NCBI RefSeq assembly: GCF_000400465.1
Contig: NW_008806289.1
Span: forward strand, 150,001 to 182,000
Direction of reading: 5' to 3'
DNA length: 32,000 nucleotides
Origin: Wallemia ichthyophaga EXF-994
Taxonomy: Eukaryota; Fungi; Basidiomycota
The notes under the pieces are model-generated. The model worked only from the letters and a program-made list of their open reading frames with translations, was not told the DNA's origin and made no database searches. Shown here piece after piece: positions 6,739 to 8,202 of this stretch. The translations under genes and the position numbers were made by a program. Within the stretch, counting starts at the first letter, position 1; every line of letters begins with the position of its first letter.

Positions 6739-6823
6739 GGCTGATTGGCGCAGTGGTAGCGCAACAGATTCCAATCTGATTGGTTCCATCTGGAGGTCGG
6801 GAGTTCAAATCTCTCATCGGTCA
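6739..6823 (+). tRNA. tRNA-Trp(CCA) with 13-nt intron at 37/38 (6775-6787)
   Basis: Acceptor stem GGCTGAT/ATCGGTC+A, D-arm GCGC-AGTGGTA-GCGC, anticodon CCA at 6771-6773, T-arm GGGAG-TTCAAAT-CTCTC, followed by TTTT. Mature length is 72 nt after removing TCTGATTGGTTCC. Confidence 0.95.
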
Positions 6824-6976: not shown

Positions 6977-7807
6977 CTAAAACCAAGATCCGAGAGTCTA
7001 TAATTATTCGTAGTGTTAGAAATATAAGTAAGAAGGATAAATAAACCACCTTCTTTGCAGATTCTGTGAAAAGTGTCGGGAGTGAAGTGTTAGAGATATA
7101 CCAATCTACACAACCCATACGCACCTTTAGCAGCTGTATTTTGAGCCTGTGTTGAGTGTAAGAAAAAGGGCACTAAAAGGTCACAAAACCCCAGAAACGC
7201 ACCTCGCCAGCCATTTTAGAAGCGTTTGAAGCGAGCCCGTGGAACTGTTCCTCGACCTGAAGAAGGTGATGTGAGAAAGGATGTGTATAAACGGGCAACA
7301 AGTGTCTCACCTGCGTAAGTACCTCTCCTCGTTCATCTGGATAAGCACAGGGGTGGTGAGCAAATGATCAAATCTCTTGGCAAAAAGCATGATGACCCAC
7401 TAAAAGCACGCTGGACTTGAGTGAAGATGCTGTTTTCATTAGCATCACGCTCCTTAGCGCGGTCTTTCTTGTATTGGTAGTATTTCTTAAGATTAGTGTC
7501 CTCAATTTCATCCTCTTCATCTGCCCACAAATCTCGGTTCGATTGTCTCCAGCCCTGTCTGCGCTTATCTTGTTTAGAGGAATTTTTAGTGGGTTTGGAA
7601 GAGGTGGGCTGAGTAGCACTGCTATCGCCACCTTGAATTGCTGTGAGATTTAACCGTTTTAGCACCGTATCACCCACTCAATTTGTTGGAAATGGAGGAG
7701 AACCATGAAGGGGAGGAAGTGGAAGTATCTGGTTTACTATTGCTGCTATTGCTATTGTTGTTATTGCTGCCATCGTCACCGCCTTTGAATTTACTAAAAA
7801 AGCTCAT
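6977..7807 (-). CDS. Small soluble protein with C-terminal R-SNARE (synaptobrevin/tomosyn-tail-like) motif, 168 aa, 7 exons
   Basis: Exons 7678-7807, 7401-7640, 7311-7336, 7203-7256, 7125-7146, 7050-7063 and 6977-6997 sum to 507 nt and splice in frame. The C-terminus is NSIFTQVQRAFNERGEVLTQVEEQFHGLASNASKMAGEAQNTAAKESAKKTLGSWF*. No TM segment. Confidence 0.75.
7735..7772 (-). repeat. Imperfect AAT/AGC triplet repeat encoding an Asn/Ser tract
   Basis: The minus strand reads GGC AGC AAT AAC AAC AAT AGC AAT AGC AGC AAT AGT in exon 1 of the R-SNARE-motif gene. Confidence 0.6.
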
Positions 7808-7875
7808 GCTGATGGATAAAGGGAATGGAAAGGGGAAATCAATTGAATGACAATATCTGAATAACTATTATAAAT

Positions 7876-8202
7876 CTAACCTTGGCGCTGTATTGAGTAT
7901 ATCATTCAGCCTTGTACTTATACTCAACACACTACACAACTCACCTGCTTATGCTTTGGATCCTTTGAGCAAATAACATACAACCTCGCCTTCCTCCTGA
8001 CTATCGAGCAACCGTCGCACATTTTCTTTACAGAGGACCTAACTTTCATTCCGTGCTGTTGTTGGTGGTGTTGCTGCGTCGGTGTACTCGTATCACGGCT
8101 ACTCAATGGCAATAGCGTTGATTTAGATTGTATCCCGCGTACACTACTAGTCAATGGCTGCCTCAGCCCACTTATCGCACCTCTTCCAACCACTCTGAGC
8201 AT
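7876..8202 (-). CDS. RTC6: Mitochondrial ribosomal protein bL36m
   Basis: Arg/Ser-rich presequence followed by [36 protein letters not shown] | RQG*. One GTGAGT..ATACAG intron. C-C-C-H zinc-ribbon ligands are present. Confidence 0.93.

Follow-up and report, generated by a model that had tools for sequence, protein, structure and literature searches.

Tomosyn/Sro7 is a large regulator of exocytosis that normally ends in a SNARE tail. To our knowledge, amisyn (STXBP6), which pairs a PH domain with a C-terminal R-SNARE-like motif, is confined to vertebrates, and outside vertebrate amisyn we know of tomosyn-type decoy SNARE motifs only as the tails of large propeller proteins. Amisyn and tomosyn lie on separate branches of a published tree (PMC6143360), and a canonical R-SNARE motif is reported to be retained in the tomosyns of fungi that lie outside the Saccharomycetales (PMC2639358). 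What the SNARE motif itself contributes is still disputed (PMC3195084, PMC10965968). The effects of the tomosyn SNARE domain on its own have been variable in animals, namely none, partial inhibition and even enhancement (PMC3195084), and a 2024 study argues against simple competition of tomosyn with VAMP2 (PMC10965968).

We analysed a 32-kb stretch of the genome of Wallemia ichthyophaga, a halophilic basidiomycete of the class Wallemiomycetes; the whole stretch is referred to below as the window. One of its genes encodes a protein of 168 amino acids which, judged by the comparisons described here, fits best the description of a tomosyn-tail homologue that stands free. Like the tomosyn/Sro7 tail (R.Reg), it has a helix that lacks an anchor and carries an ERG zero-layer arginine, hydrophobic layers on the C-terminal side, a lysine pair and an aromatic end. 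Unlike tomosyn/Sro7, it has neither the double WD40 propeller nor Lgl_C and is encoded by a separate gene adjoining that of the mitochondrial ribosomal protein L36; layers -7 to -4 are not hydrophobic, and the polybasic stretch that follows the motif is less marked, with three lysines (K157, K161 and K162). Amisyn is the functional analogue of a free decoy, being likewise a small soluble protein with an anchor-less R-SNARE-like C-terminal helix. What the two share is architecture in principle; the PH domain of amisyn is absent from the Wallemia protein, and any likeness is convergent. With Snc1/Snc2 and VAMP4 the protein shares an RG-type zero layer (ERGE.L), whereas it has no transmembrane anchor, no significant Synaptobrevin match and only a truncated motif. 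As it has no transmembrane anchor, it cannot be fusogenic.

Gene model and conservation

Removal of six GT-AG introns from the minus strand between 7807 and 6977 joins seven exons into one reading frame of 168 codons, which is ended by a TAG inside the last exon (Table 1). Rebuilding the gene by splicing reproduced what the original prediction for this DNA had proposed, namely introns of 37–64 nt, micro-exons of 14, 21, 22 and 26 nt, and a 168-aa translation that matched exactly, including QVQRAFNERGEVLTQVEEQFHGLASNASKMAGEA and the ending KKTLGSWF*. The gene is not unannotated, because GenBank already holds the identical model: along its full length the product matches, at 100% identity, the NCBI entry 'hypothetical protein E3P92_01370 [Wallemia ichthyophaga]', which is public without functional annotation and without a Pfam family. 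The claim that a listing of open reading frames misses the SNARE motif entirely was right for the exon with the zero-layer arginine, which is invisible there, but not for exon 4 (VEEQFHGLASNASKMAGE), which is listed within a 45-aa ORF.

Table 1. Positions of the features in the window
Feature	Position	Strand	Description
Mitochondrial ribosomal protein L36/RTC6, upstream neighbour	7876..8202 (exons 8202-7945, 7887-7876)	-	Pfam Ribosomal_L36 on orthologous models
Exon 1	7678..7807	-	130 nt; ATG and disordered Ser/Asn-rich N-terminus; conserved MSFFxKFK and SWFSS motifs
Intron 1	7641..7677	-	37 nt, GTGGGT..CACAG; sole in-frame GT-AG option; orthologous intron absent from L005
Exon 2	7401..7640	-	240 nt; basic/acidic/basic KRRQGWRQS..DLWADEEDE..KKYYQYKKDRAKERDANENSIFTQVQRAF; SNARE layers -3 to -1 (F116, V119, F123)
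Intron 2	7337..7400	-	64 nt; orthologous intron absent from L005
Exon 3	7311..7336	-	26-nt micro-exon; finishes the Asn124 codon and encodes ERGEVLTQ; invariant zero-layer Arg126
Intron 3	7257..7310	-	54 nt; orthologous intron absent from L005
Exon 4	7203..7256	-	54 nt; VEEQFHGLASNASKMAGE; layers +2 to +6
Intron 4	7147..7202	-	56 nt; orthologous 50-nt intron absent from L005
Exon 5	7125..7146	-	22-nt micro-exon; AQNTAAK with one base of the codon that follows; layers +7 and +8
Intron 5	7064..7124	-	61 nt; orthologue retained in the sister-species cDNA-like contig
Exon 6	7050..7063	-	14-nt micro-exon; (E)SAKK; based on conservation
Intron 6	6998..7049	-	52 nt; orthologue retained in the sister-species cDNA-like contig
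Exon 7	6977..6997	-	21 nt; TLGSWF and TAG; aromatic C-terminal end without a membrane anchor
Predicted long C-terminal helix, residues 115-166	6980..7428 (genomic span)	-	Tomosyn-tail-like R-SNARE motif; from AlphaFold2 and homology

A donor for intron 1 four bases further downstream, which would give an intron of 33 nt, was rejected because it breaks the frame. All six donors start with GTG (GTGGGT twice, GTGAGA, GTGCGT twice and GTGGTT), as do most orthologous donors; seen here in this gene and its orthologues, the pattern may be no more than the consensus of Wallemia donors.

Orthologous DNA came from W. hederae (L001) and two more species of the genus (L002/L003 and L006), as well as from a short contig (L010) and from an AT-rich metagenome scaffold that is much more distant (L004). 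Exons of 26, 54, 22 and 14 nt with the same intron positions were present in all four loci that were rebuilt (L001, L002, L006 and L004), and the 21-nt last exon in three of three complete loci, L004 breaking off 9 nt into it. The orthologues therefore share a gene model far beyond chance. In pairwise comparisons of four Wallemia species, micro-exons 3–6 were 77–100% identical, the last exon 57–81% and the introns 44–68%. The 46 codons of the tail differed pairwise by 17–21 synonymous vs 1–5 non-synonymous changes, and in the 14-nt exon 6 all differences among five species were synonymous (GAA/GAG, TCT/TCC, GCA/GCC and AAG/AAA). The serine codon of the last exon is TCT, AGT or TCC according to species, an exchange between TCN and AGY, and W. 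hederae reads TFGHFF at this end. These substitution patterns indicate strong purifying selection on the C-terminal helix. The N-terminal part is about 38% identical to that of the distant orthologue, and the stretch from ANENSIF to KKT is almost invariant.

Transcript evidence came from L005, a cDNA-like Logan contig of 940 nt from the same species as the genomic contig L002, with 2–3 mismatches. L005 lacks the L36 intron and introns 1–4 at exactly the predicted boundaries, and was therefore derived from spliced RNA. Thus, introns 1–4 have transcript support in a sister species, where alignment of L005 to L002 also confirms the site of intron 1. Introns 5 and 6 are still present in L005 (positions 812–911), and the support for the last two micro-exons comes entirely from conservation. 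Retention of these two introns could mean that splicing was incomplete, or that the C-terminus is alternative and regulated. A transcript that kept intron 5 would encode a protein ending in ...AQNTAAKGLSHLCICFG* (...AAKG followed by a short unrelated peptide) and lacking ESAKKTLGSWF.

The GenBank models at the W. hederae locus (L001; SPNW01000061.1, 1–4129) look chimeric. In one of them (P0003), L36 and the SNARE-like gene are joined into one model in which intron 5 is translated, and the 1045-aa model upstream combines Ham1p_like, Ribosomal_S21 and NDUFS1-type domains. Both the W. hederae model and the ORFs called automatically on Logan contigs (P0002, P0004 and P0005) missed the last two micro-exons, either cutting the tail short or reading through it.

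Predicted structure and SNARE layers

The protein is highly charged and rich in serine and asparagine. AlphaFold2, run on a shallow alignment, returned a low-confidence model (pLDDT 56.7) with a disordered N-terminus and helices at residues 64–73, 92–111 and 115–166, the last having block-mean pLDDT values of about 58–73. Residues 1–110 are largely disordered in this model and contain no Pfam match and no PH domain. Thus divided, the protein consists of an N-terminal two-thirds that is poorly conserved and predicted to be disordered, and a C-terminal third that is a nearly invariant helix. As had been predicted, there is no membrane anchor: the highest mean Kyte-Doolittle value over 19 residues was -0.16. 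No lipidation motif was found at the C-terminus, which has no CaaX box and no cysteine, and no WD40 or Lgl domain was found in the protein (Pfam) or nearby. The N-terminal motifs were also considered as an amphipathic or ALPS-like membrane-binding helix, and this was rejected on unremarkable hydrophobic moments (0.21 and 0.43).

With layer 0 set at Arg126, every orthologue has F V F R L V F L/M A M A across layers -3 to +7. Threonine occupies layer +8, and K, A, D/E and E occupy layers -7 to -4. Since hydrophobic layers run only from -3 to +7, the motif covers about 11 of the 16 layers, on the membrane-proximal side, and falls short of the full SNARE pattern from -7 to +8. The arginine itself stands in heptad register and is invariant in five orthologues and in P0007, the Sro7-family sequence described below. 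It aligns to the zero-layer arginine of tomosyn (1URQ), Snc1 (3B5N) and VAMP4, and to the zero-layer glutamine of Vam3 from Chaetomium thermophilum.

Relationship to the tomosyn tail

The lack of a SNARE HMM hit, which the original prediction had listed as counting against it, was formally what we observed for the Wallemia protein alone: neither the protein nor three C-terminal fragments of it matched a Pfam Synaptobrevin or SNARE model at E≤10. Having no HMM match, no transmembrane or lipid anchor and incomplete layers, the protein falls outside the Synaptobrevin family (PF00957). It likewise falls outside tomosyn/Sro7, as it has no propeller, and outside amisyn, as it has no PH domain. A single-sequence phmmer search of the PDB found no SNARE. 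A C-terminal profile built from Wallemia sequences only had just two PDB matches at E≤10, both to the Qa-SNARE Vam3 of C. thermophilum (E about 0.5), with the zero-layer glutamine aligned to Arg126. Run exhaustively against 1.84 billion representatives, phmmer gave four matches, all of them members of the family, which in the searches run was confined to Wallemia and close relatives.

The full-length Wallemia-only profile (A1) matched the sequence P0007 at E 7.5e-5 in a database of 5.8 billion sequences. Aligned by hhalign, profile A2 and P0007 gave a probability of 97%, an E-value of 1.2e-10 and 44% identity over 52 columns, and the Wallemia helix and the P0007 tail have in common the blocks ERGxVL, ASNA and NTAAKESAK, the last an identical 9-mer. 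The P0007 tail scored 47.0 bits with the Wallemia-only HMM vs a maximum of 15.4 in 20,000 shuffles, so the similarity is not compositional.

P0007 is a 177-aa ORF on a Logan contig (L007, SRR30952556) that comes from a eukaryote, probably a fungus. It is the last exon of a Sro7/tomosyn gene (L007 2–2986, plus strand). The ORF upstream of it matches Pfam Lgl_C at 4e-40 and has yeast Sro7 (2OAJ and 9Y48) as its best PDB matches; an in-frame GT-AG intron of 63 nt joins this ORF to P0007, residues 2–64 of which complete the Lgl_C domain. Residues 130–164 reach a sub-threshold score against Synaptobrevin PF00957 (E 0.005; 17 bits, below the cut-off of 26.4), and for the final 52 residues the sole PDB match was VAMP4. 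Layers -7 to -4 of the P0007 tail are S, A, P and R, so that the N-terminal layers are missing as they are in the Wallemia motif. The search that found P0007 picked up no NCBI fungal Sro7.

A joint profile (A3) was compared with 177,635 PDB sequences. Tomosyn (1URQ_A) ranked first (E 0.023) and Snc1 (3B5N_A) second (0.06), followed by VAMP4 and C. thermophilum Vam3, and all of the top SNAREs aligned in zero-layer register. Direct E-values to solved SNAREs were marginal, at 0.02–0.6. A word-indexed protein search with the 60-aa tail profile A3 gave eight candidates and added nothing, and metagenome scans with a protein pattern and with a degenerate exon-4 DNA pattern gave no matches.

The A3 list also held de novo designed helical proteins at E-values similar to those of the SNAREs. 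This would fit a xerophile's or halophile's stress protein, of the coiled-coil or hydrophilin type and without relation to SNAREs, in which a heptad composition had arisen by convergence. The missing Pfam match, the charged, Ser/Asn-rich and predicted disordered sequence, and the restriction of the family to Wallemia-like fungi are in keeping with such a protein. However, shuffled sequences came nowhere near the score of the P0007 tail, the shared blocks are identical, the partner segment in P0007 is located exactly where tomosyn carries its SNARE motif, and the invariant arginine falls into zero-layer register with four different solved SNAREs. This reading is already disfavoured, and we regard it as very improbable. 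Thus, the evidence supports the identification first proposed for the gene, a standalone, anchor-less R-SNARE of the tomosyn type. It leads from the Wallemia-only profile to a tail of the Sro7 family, and from the joint profile to tomosyn and Snc1. As the Wallemia protein has no Pfam match of its own, its link to the SNAREs is transitive, through the single tail P0007.

Position of the gene and separation from the propeller

The gene stands alone, as had been claimed, and no WD40 region can be attached to it. The RTC6 stop lies 68 nt upstream of the ATG, as predicted, and in every orthologous locus examined (L001–L006 and L010), the distant L004 included, L36 is the immediate upstream neighbour on the same strand. 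The start of the protein, MSFFxKFK, is conserved in Wallemia. No Sro7-like gene was found anywhere in the 32-kb window.

A standalone tail could also be one half of a split gene. In that case the tail of an ancestral Sro7/tomosyn would have moved to a separate locus, and would work in trans with a tail-less Wallemia Sro7 as a two-piece tomosyn. The homology of the helix is specifically to a tail that elsewhere, in P0007, is covalently attached to an Lgl_C/Sro7 protein, which speaks for this arrangement. So, weakly, does a search with the Wallemia-tail profile, which brought up no further Wallemia protein ending in such a tail, a full-length Sro7 for example; this is weak negative evidence because the search was word-indexed. 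On the other hand, the region before the helix has no similarity to the Lgl_C end or the linker of P0007, and the locus, which is syntenic with L36 and NDUFS1, yielded no propeller remnants. We consider a two-piece tomosyn to lie on the unlikely side. Naming the organism of L007 would help to date the detachment of the tail.

Possible function

The reading that we favour, and regard as reasonably probable, is that of a soluble protein of the Wallemia lineage whose R.Reg helix, homologous to the tomosyn/Sro7 tail, is a putative decoy or buffer of plasma-membrane t-SNAREs. The helix, with Arg126 as its zero layer and layers -3 to +7, would zipper up with the exocytic Q-SNAREs, the orthologues of Sso1 and Sec9, along their membrane-proximal half, where it would either replace Snc1/2 in the bundle or act alongside them. 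The bundle of helix, Qa and Qbc would be non-fusogenic, because a helix without a transmembrane anchor could not drive fusion, and the protein would in this way set the availability of plasma-membrane t-SNAREs. This mechanism is drawn from the behaviour of the tomosyn tail. Its partners, its inhibitory direction and the derivation of the gene from a Sro7 tail by fission or duplication are inferred. The inhibitory direction is uncertain, because isolated-domain effects are variable (PMC3195084) and the competition model has been challenged (PMC10965968).

The helix could act in the opposite direction, as a positive regulator or chaperone that, lacking the N-terminal layers, binds only the C-terminal half of the Sso1/Sec9 acceptor, stabilises or pre-structures it, and promotes fusion when displaced by Snc1/2. 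A precedent is the synthetic C-terminal synaptobrevin peptide 'Vc', which stabilises or pre-structures the acceptor and is displaced by N-terminal zippering. Hydrophobic layers that are confined to -3 to +7, in the family as well as in the homologous Sro7-type tail, are consistent with such a role, and an enhancement of sustained release by the tomosyn SNARE domain on its own has been seen in chromaffin cells (PMC3195084). Since the tail of full-length tomosyn is generally inhibitory (PMC2639358, PMC10965968), we think a positive regulator quite improbable.

A fungus in which the motif occurs naturally as a free protein of 168 aa, under strong purifying selection, offers a natural separation-of-function experiment, amenable to yeast-type systems. 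The interest lies in the natural separation of a tomosyn-type SNARE tail from its propeller; the function is a candidate one. The analysis also gives a predicted identity to a 'hypothetical protein' that belongs to no Pfam family. It illustrates, too, that ORF-based scanning and gene calling can miss a functional motif encoded in micro-exons of 14–26 nt.

Transcription and neighbouring features

The spacer between the L36 gene and the SNARE-like gene is 68 nt long in the window (7808–7875) and therefore leaves little room for a promoter. In the sister species, L005 (1–940) spans the L36/RTC6 coding region, a spacer of about 80 nt and the SNARE-like gene as one contig derived from spliced RNA. 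Judging from this sequence, the two genes may be co-transcribed, as a bicistronic or read-through transcript, or their UTRs may overlap.

A wider scenario would begin with a gene fission in the Wallemia lineage that freed the tail as a soluble decoy. Its dosage could then be set independently of the propeller, perhaps through co-transcription with L36 or through regulated retention of introns 5 and 6, which would exchange the ESAKKTLGSWF end for a short unrelated peptide, and this rewiring could help the most halophilic fungi known to tune exocytosis. According to the account of Wadskog 2006 given in PMC5706994, Sro7 is needed in yeast for the localisation of Ena1. Because delivery of this Na+ pump to the yeast surface needs Sro7, the fission could be part of such tuning. 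The link to salt biology, drawn by analogy with yeast, is plausible but unproven, and we hold the scenario as a whole to be unlikely.

On the other side of the gene, 153 nt past its stop, a tRNA gene lies on the opposite strand (6739–6823, plus strand; Rfam 52.2 bits). ARAGORN did not name its anticodon. Inspection by eye suggests a tRNA-Trp (CCA) with an intron of about 14 nt placed one base 3' of the anticodon, and in this reading the intron contains TTGG, which is complementary to the anticodon region.
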